A DNA stretch of 64,000 nt, from positions 1 to 64,000 of the IMG/VR virus record IMGVR_UViG_3300047548_001236, one strand, 5' to 3'. Every line of letters starts with the position of its first letter. Within the stretch, counting starts at the first letter, position 1. Shown piece after piece: positions 12,132 through 46,635 of the stretch. The position numbers and the translations under genes are program-made. The notes under the pieces are model-generated. The model saw nothing but the letters and a program-made list of their open reading frames with translations, was not told the DNA's origin and ran no database searches.

Positions 12132-13274
12132 TCAGATCTCAACCACCCTTAGTGGAGGAAACCCATTGAAAGCAACGCTGCTATATGTAGTAGTGTACGC
12201 TCCAGTGTTATTTATGATCACCTTATCGCCTGTTTTTATCGTTGCAGGCAACAGAATCTTGTGTTTTTCATAAAGCACGTCAGCACTGTCGCATGTTGGA
12301 CCAGCGAGTATGAAACCCTCCACAGGTTCATTTTCCTTACCAATCACGGCGATCTGATACTTAATAGCTTCCTGCTCTGTTTCTGCCAAACCAGAGAATC
12401 TACCAATGTTCAAATACACCCATTTTGTCGAATCGTTGTTTGACTTTTGCGACACTAGGAGAACGTCTGCAGCAATTGCACCGAGGTTTGCAACCATACC
12501 TCGACCAGGTTCAACAATCAGATAGTCGACTCCTTTGAATCTCTTTTTAATCATCGTATTGAGTAATTTATTATACTTCGAAGCTGGTGTAATGTCAACA
12601 CCGTAATAGCTTGGAAAACCACCTCCTATATTCAGCACATGAAAGTCGAATCCCTGCTCACGACATTCTTTCCATATCTCGGAAATGTAGTCCAACGTCG
12701 ATGTCCACATTTGTGGGTGTTTTGTTTGACTGCCGATATGGAAGCTCAATCCAACAGGATTCAGTCCTTTTGATTTAGCACGCTCGGCGAGCGGAATTAC
12801 CATGTCACGATGGCATCCAAACTTACGGCTGAGTGGCCAATCTGCTTCCGTATCGAGAATGATCACACGGATAAACACTCTCGAACCAGGAGCGTGTTCT
12901 GCTACTTTATCAATTTCATCAGACGAATCGACGGCAAAGAGATCAATACCTACACGATGTGCAAACCGTATATCGGAAACGCTCTTAATCGTGTTACCAA
13001 AGCTGATATCGGCAGGCTTTGCTCCTGCATCTAGACACTTTTGAATTTCACCAGCGCTTGCTGCATCAAACTTGCCTCCATACGAGCTGATTGCCTTTAA
13101 AATAGAAGGGTGAGGGTTTGCTTTAACCGCATAATGCACATTGCAGTTGGTAAAGTTTTCAGTGAAACTATCATAGTTCTGTTTAAGCGGTTCGAGATCA
13201 AGAACCAAGGTGGGATAGTCAAACGAGTTGTCTCGTATGAAACGATGTAGTTTACTTTCCATGAAACCCTCCAA
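12132..13274 (-). CDS. Fold-type III PLP-dependent ornithine/lysine decarboxylase
   Basis: HYAVKAN, FDAASAGE, SFHIGSQ, NIGGGF, EPGR, GPTCDSAD, GAYT. Confidence 0.92.
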   Translation of the reverse strand: MEGFMESKLHRFIRDNSFDYPTLVLDLEPLKQNYDSFTENFTNCNVHYAVKANPHPSILKAISSYGGKFDAASAGEIQKCLDAGAKPADISFGNTIKSVSDIRFAHRVGIDLFAVDSSDEIDKVAEHAPGSRVFIRVIILDTEADWPLSRKFGCHRDMVIPLAERAKSKGLNPVGLSFHIGSQTKHPQMWTSTLDYISEIWKECREQGFDFHVLNIGGGFPSYYGVDITPASKYNKLLNTMIKKRFKGVDYLIVEPGRGMVANLGAIAADVLLVSQKSNNDSTKWVYLNIGRFSGLAETEQEAIKYQIAVIGKENEPVEGFILAGPTCDSADVLYEKHKILLPATIKTGDKVIINNTGAYTTTYSSVAFNGFPPLRVVEI

Positions 13275-14436: not shown

Positions 14437-15726
14437 TTATTTTGGATAGTATGTCATTTCTGAGCCGTAGTCAACATCGTAGTCTGGCTCGTCGTGTTTG
14501 AAGCCGTGCTTCTCATACCACTTGATTAGTCTTTTGGTCGATTTAATATGCTCAGGACGGTTTGAGTACGCCTTTGCGAACAAGTTGATCTTAACACCGT
14601 GTTTATCTGCAAGCCCAGTCAGATGTTTCAAAGCCTTTGTGCCTGCCCCGCTCTTTGGCGCAAGAGATACGATATCGTGCATATGAACGTCGTTGCCATC
14701 TCTCGACAGATCGACGGTTGCGCCGTGTAGAATTCTGGCTGAGCGGTGAAACGGATGCTCAGTAGAGTCATTCCCGTATTCTGCCATAAATTGCTTAGCA
14801 CGCTCACCCGTTGCACCTTTACCTAGCTTGATACGAACAGGCTCTTCGGATTCGTTTATAGAGGTCTTGTACGCAGATGCTGGTATGCGATAAAAAGCAT
14901 AGCCAGACCCTGCTTCCGTATGTCCGCCCAATTTGTTTGTGTATCTGCGATATAACTTTCCCCGAGATGGTTCGGTGCTATCTGATGTGAAAAGTACAGT
15001 ATGTATTTGCGGGTTTCTTTTTAGATGGTGAGCGATGATGTTATGCATAGTACTCATCACTTTACCCGAACTTGCACCAGCATTGCCGGTAACGCCAACG
15101 TTACCATGTTTAGTCATGAAATACACATGCGCTGTGTTTGAATTGGCTTTGTCGTGGTTGACAAAGGCAATGTACGGCGTGCCATTATGCTCAAATTCGT
15201 AATTAGCACCACCACGCTGATTAATTGCCGTAGTAGTGAATAATAGGGGACTATCTCCAGCCTCGTTTATGGAAGATTTGTAGGCACTTGCAGGGACCAC
15301 GTGGATTGTATCATAGCCCGTTGGATCGGATATTCCACCGTGCTTTTCGGCATACCGCGCGTAGAGCTTTTCACGAGAAGGTTCATCAGGAGATGACGTG
15401 AACCGTACTTCTTCGATTTCAGGGTGCTTACCTAGGTGGTGCTTGACAATATTGTGTACCGTTGATAAGACTTTGACAGCCCCATGTCTTGCTCTACCTG
15501 TTACGTTCATGTCTCCCAATTCTGGTCTTTGGGAGTAGTCAGCAAAATTGACAAAGGCTGTTGGGAACGGCGCATCGTGGTGCGCGATGTTTACACGAAA
15601 CGGCTTTCCGTTATGTTGGAATGAATAGCGGTGATACCGTTGATCATACTCGTCGTGCTCGCCATCAAACTTGAATGGCAGCGCACCATCGCCTGCTTCT
15701 TTGAGGAATTGTGAAAATGACAACAT
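14437..15726 (-). CDS. Putative internal head polyprotein: capsid-targeting-like N-terminus, two repeated domains, C-terminal GNAT
   Basis: MLSFSQFLKE start; internal SINE/AGD and SINE/SEE linkers; GAGTKAL...LIKWYEKHGF; TATAAATA upstream. Confidence 0.7.
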   Translation of the reverse strand: MLSFSQFLKEAGDGALPFKFDGEHDEYDQRYHRYSFQHNGKPFRVNIAHHDAPFPTAFVNFADYSQRPELGDMNVTGRARHGAVKVLSTVHNIVKHHLGKHPEIEEVRFTSSPDEPSREKLYARYAEKHGGISDPTGYDTIHVVPASAYKSSINEAGDSPLLFTTTAINQRGGANYEFEHNGTPYIAFVNHDKANSNTAHVYFMTKHGNVGVTGNAGASSGKVMSTMHNIIAHHLKRNPQIHTVLFTSDSTEPSRGKLYRRYTNKLGGHTEAGSGYAFYRIPASAYKTSINESEEPVRIKLGKGATGERAKQFMAEYGNDSTEHPFHRSARILHGATVDLSRDGNDVHMHDIVSLAPKSGAGTKALKHLTGLADKHGVKINLFAKAYSNRPEHIKSTKRLIKWYEKHGFKHDEPDYDVDYGSEMTYYPK

Positions 15727-15757
15727 AATGGGATCTCCTTTATGCTGTATTTATACA

Positions 15758-15847
15758 TGGCGGATGGAGAGGGAGTCGAACCCCCACGAGTCGTTATCTC
15801 CTAACGCATTTCGAATGCGCGGCCACCACCTATTGGCTTGTCCATCC
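15758..15847 (-). tRNA. tRNA-Ser(CGA)
   Basis: Long variable arm, loop TTCGAAA, CCA. Confidence 0.88.
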
Positions 15848-15854
15848 GTTATTA

Positions 15855-15928
15855 TGGTGCCCTCGAAAGGATTCGAGCCTTTTCCTCTACGATGTGAACG
15901 TAGTGTCCTCCCATTAGACGACAAGGGC
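15855..15928 (-). tRNA. tRNA-Val(CAC)
   Basis: Loop TTCACAT, CCA. Confidence 0.82.
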
Positions 15929-15933
15929 AATTT

Positions 15934-16007
15934 TGGTCCTGACTGATGGGCTCGAACCATCCCTACCGGTTCCACAGACCGGTGTGCTACCGCTATCACT
16001 AAGTCAG
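15934..16007 (-). tRNA. tRNA-His(GUG), no G-1, A73
   Basis: Loop CTGTGGA; 3' end GGACCA. Confidence 0.88.
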
Positions 16008-16016
16008 GTTGATTTT

Positions 16017-16093
16017 TGGCACCGCGCCGGGATTCAAACCCTGTCCGCCTCAGTCACAGTGAGGAATGCAAATTCAATTACACCTGTCGCGGC
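16017..16093 (-). tRNA. Atypical tRNA-His(GUG)
   Basis: Loop CTGTGAC; degenerate D and T arms; G73. Confidence 0.6.
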
Positions 16094-16130
16094 ATTGTTA
16101 TTCTATTTATACTATATCTGGTCGGACGTG

Positions 16131-16505
16131 TCAACCGATTCTTTTGGTCAATTCGGCGAGCTCTGCCTCGAGCCTTTGTTTTTGCCTAATAGCATATTCA
16201 AGATCGTACGCTTTCCGTCTGATTTCTTGAAGCTCTTTTGATCGAATCGTTTTATCAGACTCTTTCCACTCGAGAGCAGGAATTGCTTCGACTTCACTCA
16301 TCACAACTTCAAACGTCACCACTTCACAGTCGTGGTAGTAATCAGCCTTTGTTTTTCTTGAGTAGCTGGATCCAACTTGCTTCATGTGAGATGTTACATG
16401 ATTGCGCGCTTTCCACTGCTTGCCCTTTCCATTGAACGTTGGAGACGTTCCACCTGTGCTGAAAAGGCCATCGCTTTTACGTCGAATCATATAGATGGTA
16501 GTCAT
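16131..16505 (-). CDS. Hypothetical protein
   Basis: ORF in operon. Confidence 0.65.
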   Translation of the reverse strand: MTTIYMIRRKSDGLFSTGGTSPTFNGKGKQWKARNHVTSHMKQVGSSYSRKTKADYYHDCEVVTFEVVMSEVEAIPALEWKESDKTIRSKELQEIRRKAYDLEYAIRQKQRLEAELAELTKRIG

Positions 16506-16792
16506 GTATCACCCTTAGCTGGATATTTGTTATCGCGGTTCTTACCTACATGATATCCATCGCAATGTAGGCACTTGTAGTTGGAAAACCACACACCGTG
16601 CTTTTTCGTCATCGATTCCGCGGCTCTCGTGGCAGATGCTTTAGTATTATACATCACTTTTGGCTTTCCGCTACCCTGCGAAATGTGGGAATTGATGTGA
16701 AACAACCCCCACGCATTTCGAGTAATAAAGAAGTTGCGAATAAATCGTTTCAACGGCATCTGATCCTTAACAACAAGGATGATGTTTCGCAT
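16502..16792 (-). CDS. Hypothetical protein with CxxC..H zinc-finger-like end
   Basis: YKCLHCDGYHVG. Confidence 0.6.
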   Translation of the reverse strand: MRNIILVVKDQMPLKRFIRNFFITRNAWGLFHINSHISQGSGKPKVMYNTKASATRAAESMTKKHGVWFSNYKCLHCDGYHVGKNRDNKYPAKGDT

Positions 16793-16793
16793 C

Positions 16794-17483
16794 TTATACA
16801 CGATTCTTCTCCAGGAATTCGTCAACCCAAAACGGAACAGTCTGTGTTGCAAGACCAATGTAATGTTCATCAAAGTCTTTGTAGTTTTCTGATTCTTTCA
16901 GATTGAACTCAATCGTCTGAGCTTTCTTCTTAGCCACATAAACAAAACCTGCAGCAGGATAGACGTTACCCGACGTGCCTATTGCCATGAAGATGTCACA
17001 ACGACGCAGCTCGTGATCGATGTCCAGCATATAGAATGGCTCTTCACCAAACCACACGATGTCGGGACGGACGGTCAACTCTCCACACTCGTAGCAAGGA
17101 TCGTTGACTGACATATGATCTGTTGCTAGTTGCTTATGGCCACAACATTCGCAGACAGCTTGAGCGAGGGATCCGTGCATATGGAGAACTTTTGACCCAG
17201 CTTTCTCGTGCAGGTCATCGACGTTCTGAGTTACGATTGTGACCTTATGTCCACTTTGCTGCAATTTAGTCAAAGCAAAATGTGCCGCATTCGGCTGAGC
17301 AGGTGCCGCGTCTTTACGACGCTGATTGTAGAAGTCCAATACCATCTGAGGATTGCGACGATACCCTTGAAGGGTGGCAACTTCTTCAATAGAGTAGCCA
17401 CTCCACAGACCGTCAGAATCTCTAAATGTCGGTATACCGCTTTCTGCGGAGATTCCGGCTCCAGTCAAAATCACTATATGCAT
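16794..17483 (-). CDS. cobB: Sir2/CobB NAD-dependent deacylase
   Basis: TGAGISAESGIPTFR, TQNVDDLHE, HMHG, RPDIVWFGE, GTSGNVYPAA. Confidence 0.93.
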   Translation of the reverse strand: MHIVILTGAGISAESGIPTFRDSDGLWSGYSIEEVATLQGYRRNPQMVLDFYNQRRKDAAPAQPNAAHFALTKLQQSGHKVTIVTQNVDDLHEKAGSKVLHMHGSLAQAVCECCGHKQLATDHMSVNDPCYECGELTVRPDIVWFGEEPFYMLDIDHELRRCDIFMAIGTSGNVYPAAGFVYVAKKKAQTIEFNLKESENYKDFDEHYIGLATQTVPFWVDEFLEKNRV

Positions 17484-17498
17484 AATGTACGTTTCCTA

Positions 17499-17951
17499 TC
17501 ATCTGTAAGCGTCTGCTTGTATCACGTGCCGATGTTCATGGCCAAGGTCAATTGTACGGCCGCCCATTTGTTTTGTGTACCTTGTATACACCGAAGCTCT
17601 TGAGGGCTCCGTTTTATCCGAGGTAAAGTCTATTGTTTGAACGTGGGGTCGATTTCCAACATGATGTTTGATTATGTGATGGACGGTGGACATTATACGG
17701 GCAGCTTTTGTTCCCTTATCACCAGTCATTTTATATACGTGGCTTTTTCTATCATCGTGGAAAGGTTCGAATGATACTTCCGCCTCACCTTGTGTATAAT
17801 GTCTCACGTCTACAAGTAGTTTGTGGCCATCTGCATCAAACGCATACGAAGCTGAATCACCGTGCCCCAATTCTGGGGACTTTTCAACTTCCTTAAAGGA
17901 GTAAGGGTTATCACGGGATTCCATTACAACAAATTGATGAAATGTCAGCAA
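17499..17951 (-). CDS. Putative internal head protein (paralog of 14437 domains)
   Basis: MLTFHQFVVME start; STVHHII...FTSD.TEPSR..Y motif. Confidence 0.7.
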   Translation of the reverse strand: MLTFHQFVVMESRDNPYSFKEVEKSPELGHGDSASYAFDADGHKLLVDVRHYTQGEAEVSFEPFHDDRKSHVYKMTGDKGTKAARIMSTVHHIIKHHVGNRPHVQTIDFTSDKTEPSRASVYTRYTKQMGGRTIDLGHEHRHVIQADAYR

Positions 17952-17980
17952 TTGTTTATCTTTCTTCGTTGTTGCTTTTA

Positions 17981-18064
17981 TGGTGCGGTCGGAGAGATTC
18001 GAACTCTCACGCTTTGCAGCACAGCGACCTCAACGCTGCGTGTCTACCATTCCACCACGACCGC
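17981..18064 (-). tRNA. tRNA-Leu(GAG)
   Basis: Class II cloverleaf, CCA. Confidence 0.92.
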
Positions 18065-18065
18065 T

Positions 18066-18524
18066 TTATTTTCTGTATGCGTCTGCAGGTACTGTATGGA
18101 CGTTAGTATCATATACCATGTTCGACCGATGGGTTGTTCCTCCCATCCTCATTGTGTAACGGTGATACAGGGAAGCTCTTGACGGTTCCGTAGTATCGGA
18201 CGTAAACCCTATCGTCCTCAATTCTGGATGTTTGGCAACATGTCTTTTAACGATATGATGAACAGTTGAAAGAATTCTTCCAGCCTTCATCCCTTGTTCG
18301 CCTGTCATGTGAAACGTAGGCATCTCCTCGCCATATTCATCTTCGCCATGATGTGTATGAAAAGTAACGTCTGCGTCTTTACCAAAATGCGTTATCGTTG
18401 CTGTATAAGGTGTTCCGTCAGCATTGAAATGATAACGTGTTTCAACTTCATCTTCGTCGCGGAGGTGGAAGTCGTAAGGTTTATCGCCAGCTTCTGCAAG
18501 CATAAAGGTTTTGAAGGAAAGCAA
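18066..18524 (-). CDS. Putative internal head protein (paralog)
   Basis: MLSFKTFMLAE start; same FTSD..EPSR motif. Confidence 0.7.
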   Translation of the reverse strand: MLSFKTFMLAEAGDKPYDFHLRDEDEVETRYHFNADGTPYTATITHFGKDADVTFHTHHGEDEYGEEMPTFHMTGEQGMKAGRILSTVHHIVKRHVAKHPELRTIGFTSDTTEPSRASLYHRYTMRMGGTTHRSNMVYDTNVHTVPADAYRK

Positions 18525-18569
18525 TTGTATTCTCCATAAACATTCAGTCGTTCTGTATATTTATGAAAT

Positions 18570-18674
18570 TGGTATCCCAGACAGGATTCGAACCTGCACC
18601 TACGTCGACTGATAACCAGCGGTAGGCCCTAGCTTTTTATGGCCCCGGTGTTTACCCACTTCCACCACTAGGAT
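18570..18674 (-). tRNA. Degenerate Leu-like tRNA with enlarged variable arm
   Basis: Acceptor, D and T arms and CCA intact; anticodon stem poorly paired. Confidence 0.5.
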
Positions 18675-18680
18675 ATTTTT

Positions 18681-18757
18681 TGGAGGTCGACCATGGACTT
18701 GAACCACGACCCCAGCTCTTGCAAGAGCTGTACATTAACCAATTTTGCTAATCGACC
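18681..18757 (-). tRNA. tRNA-Cys-like with 8-nt anticodon loop
   Basis: CAGCT-CTTGCAAG-AGCTG; U73; CCA. Confidence 0.7.
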
Positions 18758-19117
18758 TTATTGTTTAGGATCGCGGTACATCGCTTCTCGAGTACTGTAA
18801 TCCTTGTTACGTCCTTTGTTCTCGACAAACCCATGACGCTTGTAGAACTTGATCAACCGAGACTTTGAACCACCAAAGTCTGATGAGGGAGTCAACGTCA
18901 CACGCTTTTGTTTATCATCAGCGTATGCCGTGATACGCTTCATGGCTTCTGTTCCAAGACCTTCATTCCGACGATCCTTCGGCACGATGATCTTGCCAAC
19001 GTGCAAATAGCCAGGACGACTGTGATGGACGGAGTGGTCAACACCAAGCTCATCCAGAGCCTGGCGAAGCTGATCGATATCGTTACTTTCAAGAATGTAT
19101 TGTTTGAACGAAAACAT
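18758..19117 (-). CDS. GNAT acetyltransferase with capsid-targeting-like N-terminus
   Basis: MFSFKQYILE; RRNEGLGTEAM; LIKFYKRHGF. Confidence 0.8.
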   Translation of the reverse strand: MFSFKQYILESNDIDQLRQALDELGVDHSVHHSRPGYLHVGKIIVPKDRRNEGLGTEAMKRITAYADDKQKRVTLTPSSDFGGSKSRLIKFYKRHGFVENKGRNKDYSTREAMYRDPKQ

Positions 19118-19414
19118 GGTCCACCCTTTTGGGTGTATTTATCAATAGTATTCGTACATCTGATTGAGGCAGCGCTTACACTCGCCCTTGTAGTATTCGT
19201 TCATCGTTATCCTTAGCAGCCATATTATGGCCTGCGATTTTGCTGGTATCATTTTTGTCTCTCTGTGTGTCTATGAGGCAGGTGCGGTATCCCCAGCATC
19301 TTTAAAGCCAAAAACAGGCTCGCTAGTCCCATGCTCCTTTTGAGATTAGGGCCCTAATCCCTCCAGCTGTATTTATGATCACTAGATACAGTTGGACTTT
19401 CCTTACCTCGGTTC

Positions 19415-21237: not shown

Positions 21238-21313
21238 TGGCGGCCCTGGTGGGACTCGAACCCACGACCATGAGTTTTAGAGGCTCTAGCTCTACCATCT
21301 GAGCTACAAGGCC
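21238..21313 (-). tRNA. Amber suppressor tRNA (anticodon CUA)
   Basis: Loop CT-CTA-AA, canonical D/T arms, G73, CCA; two mismatches in anticodon stem. Confidence 0.8.
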
Positions 21314-42756: not shown

Positions 42757-43164
42757 TTATTTTTCTTCGATTGATATGATTCGATGTGGTGGCACATTTT
42801 CAGTGTGTAGGGATATATCCGCGCCCGTCAAATCGCCTGGATGTTTGTTGAGCAAGTCTTCGTGTGGATTGTCGGGATCGTATGCCATATCTGGTGTGAT
42901 GTGATGGGGGTGATTATCGTGTGGAGGTATTCTAAACTTGACGATGGTCTTTTTAACACTCGTGACAAAATTTGATGGCTGTCCTATAGTAGCAAAGATT
43001 CCATAGTCTCCGTTTATACCATGTTTCCGAAACGAATCAGCTACATGTCCGGGCGATTCATGGTAGGCGATTATACCGTTGGGCCAATGCTTACGTATAC
43101 GATCGTGAAACTCTCGTTCGTAATGATCATTGTCTTCCGTGATAAATTGCTTGAACGTTTTCAT
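42757..43164 (-). CDS. Putative internal head protein, ART-like
   Basis: MKTFKQFITE resembles T4 CTS MKTYQEFIAE; AYHES...KHGI...GIFAT. Confidence 0.65.
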   Translation of the reverse strand: MKTFKQFITEDNDHYEREFHDRIRKHWPNGIIAYHESPGHVADSFRKHGINGDYGIFATIGQPSNFVTSVKKTIVKFRIPPHDNHPHHITPDMAYDPDNPHEDLLNKHPGDLTGADISLHTENVPPHRIISIEEK

Positions 43165-44754: not shown

Positions 44755-46635
44755 TCAACCTTTGTCTCTGTAGTATCGGTGAGTTACATGGCGTGGCTCA
44801 CCTCGCTTCTTTGCTAGAGCAGTTAGAGCTGCGTCCTGCACGCGATATGAGTCGTCGTTTTTGTAAGCATTCTCGAGCTGTTCTATAGTTGCCTTGCGAT
44901 GCTTGACTGCGTGTTCGCGTGTAAGCCAGTTGGGGCTCTGCAGTGCTTGAGCAACATGAGATTCATCTGCTTTTCTGTGCTTCAATGCGGCCTGGTGGAT
45001 GTGTGTCTCGTCTATCCACGATTGGTCAGTGTGGTTGAGAGCTTTTGTTAGTAGCTCTTTATCAGCATTCTTGTGTGAAACGACTGTCTTCTTAACGTAA
45101 GCAGAAGGATCTTCAAATCCTGCGTGCAGATCCGATGCTGTGTTTTCAGGATGTGCGTATGCAGCCTCACGTACAGTCCACGCAGGATCGGACTTCGCCA
45201 TCTTTATGTGCTCGGCTGTTGCCTTTGGATGTGTGACGACCGCAACACGAGCTATTGCACGATCGTTGGATTTCTTGTTCAAGACCCGAGTTAGAGTCTC
45301 TGGCGATGTCGATGGATGTTTCAAAACGTAAGCGACAGCGTTTCCAGATGTGGATGTGTCAACAATTTTATCAATGTGGTGCGATCGTGTGTTGGGATGG
45401 TCAGCAACTGCTGCTGTAATACTAACGTTATCAGCTGCCTCTGGACGCGATAGAATATCGTCAATATCTTTTGAAGTAGCATTTTGGTTTTTACGTAGTG
45501 CCGCTGCTGCTGTCATTAGATTAGAATGAGACATTCCAGCTCGAATTACTCTTGGTGTTGCATTTGGATGGTTAATAGCCATGTATGCAGATTGAGGATC
45601 TGTTTGGTTGTTCACAGCGTCCATCAGGTGGCGCTCTGTTGCTTGAGGGCTCTTCATGGCAGCTTGTCTAACCAAATTATGTTTGTCGCGAAGCGCCATA
45701 GTAATATGTTGAGGGATTATCTTATTTACATCTGTGAGAGCGGCAATGCGACTCTCATCATTACCCGTTTTAAGAATGTGTGTAATATGCGCCGATGTGA
45801 AATCTGGATGTCTTGCTACAAATCTTTTGACATCAGGATGTTGAGAGTCAAAGTTCTTCACCATCTGAACAATGTGTTGTTTAGTGATGGCGGGATGAAC
45901 GGTACGTGTCACATGATTATCATTGTAAACATCAGGGTGTTTTGTGAAAATGCCCGACGAGTATGGCCCACTTAGTTCTTTCGCTATACGATGAGAATCT
46001 TCCGTAAATTTTGGGTGACTAACTCCATATTCAGCATCGACGCTGTACATCGTGTGCCCTTGTTCGTTATGGTGCGGATGAAGAGTAGCACGGTATATTT
46101 CTTGGCCGTTTTGATCGTGGACAAAGTGAACGACCGTACCGTGCTTGATCTCATGCTTGAGGTAACGACGATTGATCCCATTGACAACATTCTTGCAGCT
46201 AATGTCTTTCCATGAATGTCCTCTCGGATGCTCGGCGTTAGGTGTGGGGTTTGTTTGTCCAGCAACTTCGGTTCCACGAACAGTCGTCGTCTTGTGATTA
46301 GTGTAGCCTGTTTGACGAACAGGGTCCTTGTCAAATTGCAGACGTAGGCTGTTGTCTTTGACAGCTCTACCTATCCGAACGTCACGACCATATTTGTCTT
46401 TAATGGAGCCACGAATGTAGTCATCATGAGATATGTCATGTCCGAGATGTCGTTCGATTTGACGATGGATTTCAGACTTATCGTCGTTCTTGATCTCACC
46501 ATGGACCTTATCGATGTCCTTGCCAAAGAAGTGATCGGTTGCTTCACGAGCTTTCGGTGTCATCTTTGTCTTAGCGTATTGATCACGCTGTTCGTCAGTC
46601 AAATACTCAAGAAGAAATGTCTTGAATCCAAACAC
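44755..46635 (-). CDS. Large HEAT/LRV-repeat protein with capsid-targeting-like N-terminus
   Basis: MFGFKTFLLE; about 24-aa repeats (VR.AA..HP.AT..HI..AL). Confidence 0.75.
   Translation of the reverse strand: MFGFKTFLLEYLTDEQRDQYAKTKMTPKAREATDHFFGKDIDKVHGEIKNDDKSEIHRQIERHLGHDISHDDYIRGSIKDKYGRDVRIGRAVKDNSLRLQFDKDPVRQTGYTNHKTTTVRGTEVAGQTNPTPNAEHPRGHSWKDISCKNVVNGINRRYLKHEIKHGTVVHFVHDQNGQEIYRATLHPHHNEQGHTMYSVDAEYGVSHPKFTEDSHRIAKELSGPYSSGIFTKHPDVYNDNHVTRTVHPAITKQHIVQMVKNFDSQHPDVKRFVARHPDFTSAHITHILKTGNDESRIAALTDVNKIIPQHITMALRDKHNLVRQAAMKSPQATERHLMDAVNNQTDPQSAYMAINHPNATPRVIRAGMSHSNLMTAAAALRKNQNATSKDIDDILSRPEAADNVSITAAVADHPNTRSHHIDKIVDTSTSGNAVAYVLKHPSTSPETLTRVLNKKSNDRAIARVAVVTHPKATAEHIKMAKSDPAWTVREAAYAHPENTASDLHAGFEDPSAYVKKTVVSHKNADKELLTKALNHTDQSWIDETHIHQAALKHRKADESHVAQALQSPNWLTREHAVKHRKATIEQLENAYKNDDSYRVQDAALTALAKKRGEPRHVTHRYYRDKG

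Follow-up and report, generated by a model that had tools for sequence, protein, structure and literature searches.

Probable capsid-targeted GNAT-fold modules and a predicted three-module polyprotein in a freshwater T4-like phage

How might a phage load several proteins into its head behind a single targeting signal? This question is raised by positions 14,437 to 19,117 of the stretch analysed here (the window), which is the first 64 kb of the 282,855-bp virus record IMGVR_UViG_3300047548_001236 (45% G+C), the genome of a freshwater T4-like phage. In this region, four minus-strand genes encode proteins of 429, 150, 152 and 119 amino acids (aa) whose N-termini resemble the capsid-targeting sequence (CTS) of the T4 internal proteins, and the longest protein is divided by two S-I-N-E junctions. 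Our reading, to which a probability of roughly 0.6 is given, is that the four genes encode T4-type capsid-packaged internal proteins made of GNAT-fold modules of two types, A and G, which are cut by a protease and injected.

Leaders, modules and junctions

The initial annotation had described four open reading frames (ORFs) with CTS-like N-termini, the order A-SINE-A'-SINE-GNAT in the 429-aa ORF, and a short shared site directly upstream of three of the four genes; all of these were recovered. In the 429-aa protein, the CTS covers residues 1-10 (MLSFSQFLKE, ending in L-K-E; 15697..15726, minus strand, as are all features of the four genes) and is followed by AGDG. Module A1 (residues 11-155; 15262..15696) ends with the first S-I-N-E (residues 152-155; 15262..15273) and module A2 (residues 156-292; 14851..15261) with the second (residues 289-292; 14851..14862); the remainder is module G (residues 293-429; 14440..14850), a minimal GNAT. 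The predicted cuts, after Glu155 and Glu292, would leave A2 beginning with AGDSPL and G with SEEPVRIKLGK, and the predicted mature masses of A1, A2 and G are 16.4, 14.9 and 15.4 kDa. The whole protein contains only four [LIV]-x-E sites, three at module boundaries and one inside A1 (residue 106).

The other three genes encode single modules. The 150-aa protein (17499..17951) and the 152-aa protein (18066..18524) both start with TTG, and their CTSs read MLTFHQFVVME followed by SRDN and MLSFKTFMLAE followed by AGDK; the CTS of the 119-aa protein (18758..19117) reads MFSFKQYILE followed by SNDI. Their predicted mature products are of 15.9, 16.2 and 12.5 kDa. A2 is 45% identical to A1 (E 7e-29; domain E 1.4e-49 with a hidden Markov model (HMM) of A), and both modules are, as had been proposed, clear paralogues of the 150-aa and 152-aa proteins (blastp E 1e-19 to 1e-32). 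The proposed match between G and the 119-aa protein is real (blastp E 1e-4; E 9e-7 with a G-only HMM run on all ORFs of the genome), but it is distant and confined to positions 66-134 of the G profile, its C-terminal half.

The T4 leaders, as read from NC_000866, are MKTYQEFIAE followed by A in ipII and ipIII, and MKTFKEF...TITE followed by A in ipI. In T4, L/I-X-E marks the sites after which the protease gp21 cleaves, and 10 residues at the start of IPIII suffice as a targeting signal (PMC9026906). The leaders of the present locus resemble the T4 pattern MKT[YF][QK]EF and end in L-K-E, L-A-E and I-L-E, plus the variant V-M-E. Over the whole genome, 19 CTS-like N-termini were found, against about one in reversed or shuffled sequence. 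A gp21-type prohead protease is encoded (Pfam Peptidase_S77, PF03420, 128 bits; C1:172969-173415), as well as a T4-type major capsid protein (Pfam Gp23, PF07068, 485 bits); the portal-sized and scaffold-sized ORFs of the head module around gp23, which were assigned by position only, follow the T4 order.

Late-promoter-like sites are located 19-34 nt before the start of three genes: TATAAATA (15748..15755), 22 nt upstream of the 429-aa start; CATAAATA (18558..18565), 34 nt upstream of the 152-aa start; and GATAAATA (19136..19143), 19 nt upstream of the 119-aa start. TATAAATA was observed 15 times in the window for 1.36 expected (11-fold), almost always on the coding strand. It also precedes the polyprotein orthologues of two relatives, L004 and L006 (the latter a 297-kb phage contig). 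Relatives carry TATAAATA at the site where the 152-aa gene has CATAAATA here, and the L006 orthologue of the 119-aa gene has CATAAATA in place of GATAAATA. The 150-aa gene is probably co-transcribed. The TTG start of the 152-aa gene is backed by homologues from other contigs, which conserve the whole N-terminus; since TTG is the true start, the public gene call, which begins at Met8 (145 aa), loses the CTS. The same error could hide CTS signals elsewhere.

When 1.84 billion representative proteins were searched with the A HMM, 1,732 clusters (defined at 50% identity) were matched at E<=1e-3 and 341 at E<=1e-10. The family is large and without annotation, and it appears to be phage-restricted; in the ESM Atlas, those clusters that come closest in model features are 95-100% viral (three were listed, as leads rather than as shown relatives), and the close homologues come from metagenome contigs only. 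Among the best 150 clusters, about two thirds consist of a single module of about 150 aa that stands alone and, in nearly every case, opens with a T4-like CTS (for instance MKTFKQYINE, or MKSFKEFLTE followed by IFD). The remainder are chains, in which two to six A modules are joined and the protein reaches up to 1,566 aa. The architectures encountered were A, A-G, A-A-G, A-A-A-G, A-G-methyltransferase, G-X and X-G-X. Stand-alone G proteins with a CTS also exist, and their cut site falls at the place matching junction 2.

In order to compare leaders with junctions, 234 A modules (134 N-terminal and 100 internal) were aligned to the profile. At the cut position, Glu was present in all 129 aligned N-terminal modules and in 69 of 72 internal ones; L/I/V occupied P3 in 119/122 and 63/66, respectively. 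Phe was found at position 4 in 105 of 109 N-terminal modules, whereas the targeting positions 1-7 were absent from internal modules. Internal copies thus keep the part read by the protease and drop the part read by the scaffold. Furthermore, some linkers of relatives are relics of a start codon and CTS (YRMSESFLNE, YKMSESFLNE and YKMTEGFIIE, each followed by AGD), from which it was concluded that chains originate when adjacent CTS genes become fused in frame.

Relatives in cultured phages were reached by tblastn with P0040, a three-module member of the family, which matched vibriophages of the KVP40 group and Agrobacterium phage Atu_ph07. Vibrio phage ValKK3 carries a tandem A-family trio, ORF145-147 (L012:2294-4544; A-HMM E 6e-10 to 1.2e-9), with the leaders MKFSEYQNELTE followed by AFD, or MKFSEYQRLNE followed by SLD, a variant leader; two of the three proteins are of about 300 aa and have extra domains. 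A further vibriophage match is ORF252 of nt-1.

For Atu_ph07, whose gp204 is a gp21 homologue (PMC6102473 Table S3), a published virion proteome exists. Accessions were paired with gp numbers by exact molecular weight and adjacency, the accession offset giving about gp430 instead. On this basis, AUZ95242 (two A modules, MLLSE-LFD...NLTE-LFD; 33.72 kDa) was taken as gp483, AUZ95241 (X-A; 31.68 kDa) as gp482, and AUZ94875 (41.40 kDa; N-terminus MRLFQLLE-TAEE, a GNAT of the 119-aa type, then SITE-TAEL and another domain) as gp63. In virions, gp483 was detected by 16 unique peptides (55.8% coverage) with a peak in gel band 12, the band in which the 13-16 kDa proteins have their maximum and where gp482 also peaks; gp63 (13 peptides) peaks in band 8, alongside proteins of 29-30 kDa (PMC6102473 Table S5). 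The predicted junction cuts would yield 16.3 and 16.9 kDa from gp483, and 12.2 and 28.2 kDa from gp63. The Atu_ph07 relatives are therefore present in virions and, at band level, migrate at module size.

Thus, packaging and cleavage are well supported by comparison, through the conservation of the junctions, the T4-type protease and capsid protein, the CTS match and the virion homologue of Atu_ph07. In the proposed scheme, the genes would be transcribed late from T4-type TATAAATA promoters, and the N-terminal 10-11 residues (M-x-[ST]-F-x-x-[FY]-[ILV]-x-E) would dock each protein on the prohead scaffolding core. The gp21-type S77 protease would then cut after each exposed [LIV]-x-E, removing the targeting peptide and, in the 429-aa protein, also cutting both S-I-N-E junctions, so that one targeting signal would load three proteins (A1, A2 and G). 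The mature modules would be ejected together with the DNA and become active in the cell that has just been infected. For this phage, we infer packaging, cleavage and injection, and likewise catalysis and targets.

Folds, divergence and shuffling of the modules

Domain A had been regarded in the initial annotation as a fold separate from GNAT, with structure prediction and Foldseek suggested to examine it. In the AlphaFold model of the 152-aa protein (predicted local distance difference test, pLDDT, 82.8; predicted template-modelling score 0.79), five strands are followed by a long helix, a strand, a helix and two strands, without the alpha1-alpha2 helices of GNATs. All its top matches in the PDB were GNAT acetyltransferases (Foldseek E ~1e-4), and structural comparison by VIA gave Z 9.4 for the spermidine acetyltransferase SpeG and Z 9.2 for ornithine decarboxylase (ODC) antizyme. 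In the AlphaFold DB, the nearest entries were uncharacterised proteins of about 150 aa, then GNATs. The analysis therefore returned a GNAT fold for A, and the separation of the two folds was not borne out. DUF6934 (PF22028) was matched at E<0.01 by 15 of 32 A modules; A1 scores 29.2 bits for a cut-off of 27, and the 150-aa and 152-aa proteins fall below the gathering cut-off. As modelled, A is a divergent GNAT fold near DUF6934. Its conserved residues (T-G-x-x-G-x-x-A, STVHxI..H and FTS...EPSR..LY.RY...GG) lie in the acetyl-CoA-binding region of GNATs. PHROGs returned nothing for the A proteins, and no significant match emerged when solved structures were searched with a profile of A.

Module G was modelled with AlphaFold2 at a pLDDT of 91. 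Its best PDB match was AcrVA5 (6iuf; Foldseek E 1e-5), with a template-modelling score of 0.77 over the whole of AcrVA5 and 21-22% identity. A profile match to 6iuf is borderline (E 0.02, 18 bits) and spans the G-x-G loop and the following helix-strand-helix. The loop, PKSGAG, keeps G-x-G with Pro at the first position, and G did not match a curated GNAT sequence model. The 119-aa protein contains a canonical R-x-x-G-x-G (RNEGLG) and is recognised by Pfam Acetyltransf_7/1 (Acetyltransf_7 29.0 bits for a cut-off of 27) and by phrog_10691 (E 3.6e-31), a profile of 3,925 positions. The protein is most closely related to modules in giant phage proteins, which GenBank records describe variously as DarB-like antirestriction, PLxRFG protein or methylase; the carriers annotated as DarB-like are in Serratia phage Parlo and Pseudomonas phage Skulduggery. 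Although A and G both have a GNAT fold, they are not demonstrably homologous by sequence, because profile-profile comparison aligned the CTS only.

A tree of the 32 A modules placed module 1 of the polyprotein as sister to module 2 of a relative's polyprotein (support 100/99) and showed three further position swaps. Among orthologues in the same proteins, the A modules have a median identity of 55%, against 76% for the G modules. The 150-aa gene, which has an end branch of 1.24 and is absent from the syntenic relatives L004 and L006, is a lineage-specific fast-evolving duplicate. The modules behave as independent units, and the shuffling of their order between phages is strongly supported.

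G and the 119-aa protein are probably acetyl-CoA-dependent acetyltransferases modifying host proteins. For the A modules, which evolve faster and vary in copy number, two roles are most likely: that of an acyltransferase whose acceptor site has diversified, or that of a GNAT-fold binder of host targets that vary. The initial annotation had gone further and proposed a set of injected anti-defence effectors released from a polyprotein. The capsid-targeted paralogues and the protease-site linkers of that proposal are strongly supported by comparison; its anti-defence part is suggested by analogy. This role is plausible by likeness to T4 Ip1-3, to AcrVA5 through the fold of G, and to the DarB-like-annotated proteins that carry a GNAT of the 119-aa type.

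Genomic context and alternative explanations

The leader was also found on proteins of other kinds. Within the window, these are a 135-aa protein beginning MKTFKQFITE (42757..43164, minus strand), to which no family was assigned, and a 626-aa protein with HEAT repeats, beginning MFGFKTFLLE followed by YLTDEQ (44755..46635, minus strand). Seven proteins of 475-734 aa, the 626-aa one included, share such a leader (M..FK.FLLE then YLTD.Q; one reads EDVLLEN), and six of the seven match HEAT or LRV repeat models of Pfam. Six of the seven genes are contiguous behind one TATAAATA (C1:213304-225319, plus strand), most of their stop and start codons overlapping. From sequence, the 475-734-aa set looks like a second, unrelated family of capsid-targeted proteins. 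Alt-like ADP-ribosyltransferases had been considered for the large proteins of this block and were set aside, Pfam giving HEAT/LRV repeats. A 502-aa ORF (C1:171103-172611, plus strand), between the portal-sized ORF and the protease gene, starts with MKKFRQIISE followed by VAQ, has TATAAATA upstream, and is possibly a prohead core or internal protein. As it heads at least 15 proteins of the genome, some of them unrelated in fold, the leader is a general address label rather than the feature of one family.

The CTS genes are placed inside a much expanded tRNA region (38 tRNA genes in the window, all on the minus strand). In T4, the ip genes also flank a tRNA cluster on the same strand (NC_000866), so that the neighbourhood is comparable. 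One of the tRNAs (21238-21313, minus strand; Rfam tRNA 60.9 bits) has a CUA anticodon, is labelled Pyl by ARAGORN and would read UAG; from its sequence, it may be a phage-carried amber suppressor. A 102-nt tRNA-like sequence (18573-18674, minus strand), found by Rfam and missed by ARAGORN, possibly contains an intron or a long insert, and the adjoining tRNA (18681-18757, minus strand) has a four-base anticodon (tgca) according to ARAGORN.

Between the GNAT genes lies a gene for a Sir2/CobB-type deacetylase (16794..17483, minus strand; Pfam SIR2 E 3.8e-46), which lacks a CTS and is regarded as context, not cargo. It begins 15 nt after the 150-aa gene, and its position between GNAT genes is kept in L004 and L006. 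CobB is reported to reverse the acetylation of Cas12a by AcrVA5 (preprint, 10.1101/2021.11.16.468554); a phage deacetylase among packaged acetyltransferases may protect the producing cell. Downstream of the polyprotein gene, an ornithine/diaminopimelate/arginine-decarboxylase-like pyridoxal-phosphate enzyme is encoded (12132-13274, minus strand; Pfam E 1.8e-51); this ODC-like gene is syntenic in both relatives. Together with the fold matches of A, it makes a polyamine link possible, with support at the fold level only. Near the syntenic locus of the related contig (L006:15961-17170), heme oxygenase and ferredoxin-dependent bilin reductase genes were noticed; such genes are best known from cyanophages.

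A search of sequencing runs found the region in full in one freshwater metagenome only. RNA sequencing runs had about 7% of sampled words in common with it, taken to be conserved parts such as tRNA genes. No close relative was found among 50,697 GenBank phages, and tblastn against the same phages returned nothing for the 152-aa protein or for P0063 and P0094, two divergent stand-alone members. A scan of IMG/VR with the A alignment gave no confirmed relative.

Several observations weigh against packaged, protease-cut and injected GNAT modules. Module A has T-G-x-x-G-x-x-A in place of the canonical Q/R-x-x-G-x-G/A loop and has no Pfam GNAT match. No promoter motif was seen upstream of the 150-aa gene, its ribosome-binding site is weak, and its leader is the one ending in V-M-E, not L/I-x-E. 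Some junctions of relatives read T-N-E or M-N-E, outside the strict T4 consensus, and L-x-E might in principle be conserved because it belongs to the fold. The Atu_ph07 homologue is distant (A HMM E 1.5e-12), and its evidence is band-level migration, not mapped N-termini. Finally, the phage is known only from a metagenome.

Three other explanations were considered. It is improbable that the proteins are packaged and lose their CTS while the 429-aa protein stays whole as a tandem GNAT, the [LIV]-x-E motif belonging to the domain structure. Tandem GNAT proteins are common in cells, one domain often being non-catalytic; the motif is followed by a conserved [AS]-[GF]-D-x-P-Y-x-F that is clearly within the domain, and, given the additional site inside A1, not every [LIV]-x-E need be cut. 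On the other hand, the same Glu is the CTS cut site of stand-alone members and is therefore outside the mature domain. The internal copies retain only P3 and P1, the rest of the CTS being lost; relic Met+CTS linkers are seen, and module order and number vary freely. In addition, both AlphaFold2 models are least reliable over the first ten residues (pLDDT 52 and 61), and the A-A protein of Atu_ph07 runs mainly at single-module size. Processed proteins acting within the head are likewise improbable, whether as core or scaffold, in DNA condensation or charge neutralisation, or on polyamines with the ODC-like enzyme. T4 internal proteins are abundant there, at about 1,000 copies embedded in the head DNA (PMC3012670), and three mature modules are basic (isoelectric point, pI, 9.0-9.8); the other three, however, are neutral or acidic (pI 6.3-7.2). 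SpeG and ODC antizyme as best structural matches of A, with the syntenic ODC-like gene downstream, favour the polyamine version; as SpeG does not stand out from other GNATs at Z values of 8-9.4, this version is retained as a minor alternative. The fast divergence of the modules, their duplication and their shuffling suit a conflict interface better than a structural role, and the 119-aa type of GNAT recurs in giant proteins, some of them annotated as DarB-like.

We consider it very improbable that the leader no longer serves as packaging signal and that the proteins are ordinary late cytoplasmic enzymes with a likeness to the T4 CTS inherited without function. Packaging in this genome does rest on comparison, and the Sir2 and ODC-like neighbours are metabolic-type genes. 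Nevertheless, the motif is common to many proteins, including the fold-unrelated HEAT-repeat ones, far above chance; more than 100 members of the family in other phages conserve it at their N-terminus; the cognate protease is encoded; and homologues are found in Atu_ph07 virions. All three explanations lose weight in view of the junction statistics, the shuffled modules and the virion proteome of Atu_ph07, and capsid-packaged, protease-cut GNAT modules remain the preferred reading.

A broader proposal can be put forward tentatively, and we hold it to be rather doubtful in its full form: prohead-protease-cut effector chains would be a general, unrecognised route by which T4-related and other large phages load a variety of small enzymes into the head behind one targeting signal. 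The A family (1,732 clusters, with chains of up to six modules in proteins of 800-1,500 aa) would be its main cargo, a phage-specific radiation of GNAT-fold acyltransferases or pseudo-enzymes diversifying by cassette shuffling against host immunity proteins. The Sir2/CobB enzyme, co-transcribed with these genes, would undo unwanted self-acetylation where the phage is produced.

Relation to known delivery systems

Among injected phage proteins, the T4 internal proteins are the classic case. The locus suggests that their delivery route carries a much larger, probably enzymatic repertoire, and it offers a simple evolutionary way to a bigger payload, in which adjacent CTS genes are joined in frame and the linker retains nothing of the signal but its protease site. 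It also provides a sequence rule, a CTS followed by modules split by [LIV]-x-E, for finding packaged effectors in uncultured phages, and the idea is testable in the cultured phages Atu_ph07, ValKK3 and nt-1. The locus may also be relevant to T4-based protein-delivery vectors, since several cargos could ride behind one CTS. CTS-bearing internal proteins, their classic processing by gp21 and multi-domain injected polyvalent proteins are already known. In the literature searched, we found no account of a large homologous family of GNAT-fold cargo behind a T4 CTS, of module chains linked by the cleavage half of the CTS, at which the prohead protease would act in trans, or of the origin of such chains by tandem CTS gene fusion and their shuffling. 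DUF6934, the cut-off of which is passed by A1, is a Pfam family without described function; one passing mention of it was found in the literature, and no report was found that places it behind a CTS or in a polyprotein.

Among solved structures, AcrVA5 lies nearest to module G, and both are unusually small GNATs on mobile elements. Their sequence similarity is borderline, and G has an additional N-terminal helix and C-terminal tail. To our knowledge, AcrVA5 has not been reported as capsid-packaged.

In the giant phages phiKZ, 201phi2-1 and SPN3US, many proteins inside the head are processed by a relative of gp21, which cleaves behind the Glu of short motifs and in some proteins does so at more than one site (PMC9026906). 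These phages differ from the present one in the motif, S/A-X-E, and in their known substrates, which are propeptide-bearing head proteins. We know of no description of chains of homologous effector modules in those giant phages.

Polyvalent proteins of phages and conjugative elements, among them P1 DarB-like proteins, carry multiple effector domains, with GNATs among the effector types, and presumably enter the recipient along with the DNA (Iyer et al. 2017, PMC5512222). Three GNAT-fold modules in one polypeptide behind a CTS recall this arrangement. Where polyvalent proteins are processed at all, peptidase domains of their own, such as a zincin-like MPTase, are predicted to do so (PMC5512222); no peptidase domain was found in the 429-aa polyprotein by Pfam or PHROG scans. 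The chains described here differ in that their cut sites fit the prohead protease acting in trans, that a T4 CTS leads them, and that they are mostly repeats of one family.

The nearest likeness is to IPI, IPII and IPIII of T4 and the polymorphic ip loci of T-even phages: an N-terminal targeting peptide of about 10 residues ending in [LI]-x-E, a cognate gp21/S77 protease, and small, non-essential-looking, fast-evolving genes beside a tRNA cluster and on the same strand. All three T4 proteins (Ip1-3) are injected inhibitors of GmrSD-type restriction enzymes, as was established only recently (PMC12373910), and no sequence similarity to them was seen beyond the leader. The T4 proteins are single, small and non-enzymatic, with no mutual homology beyond the leader, whereas the cargo of the present phage is a homologous GNAT-fold family, with tandem duplicates and with polyproteins in which the linkers reuse the cleavage part of the CTS.

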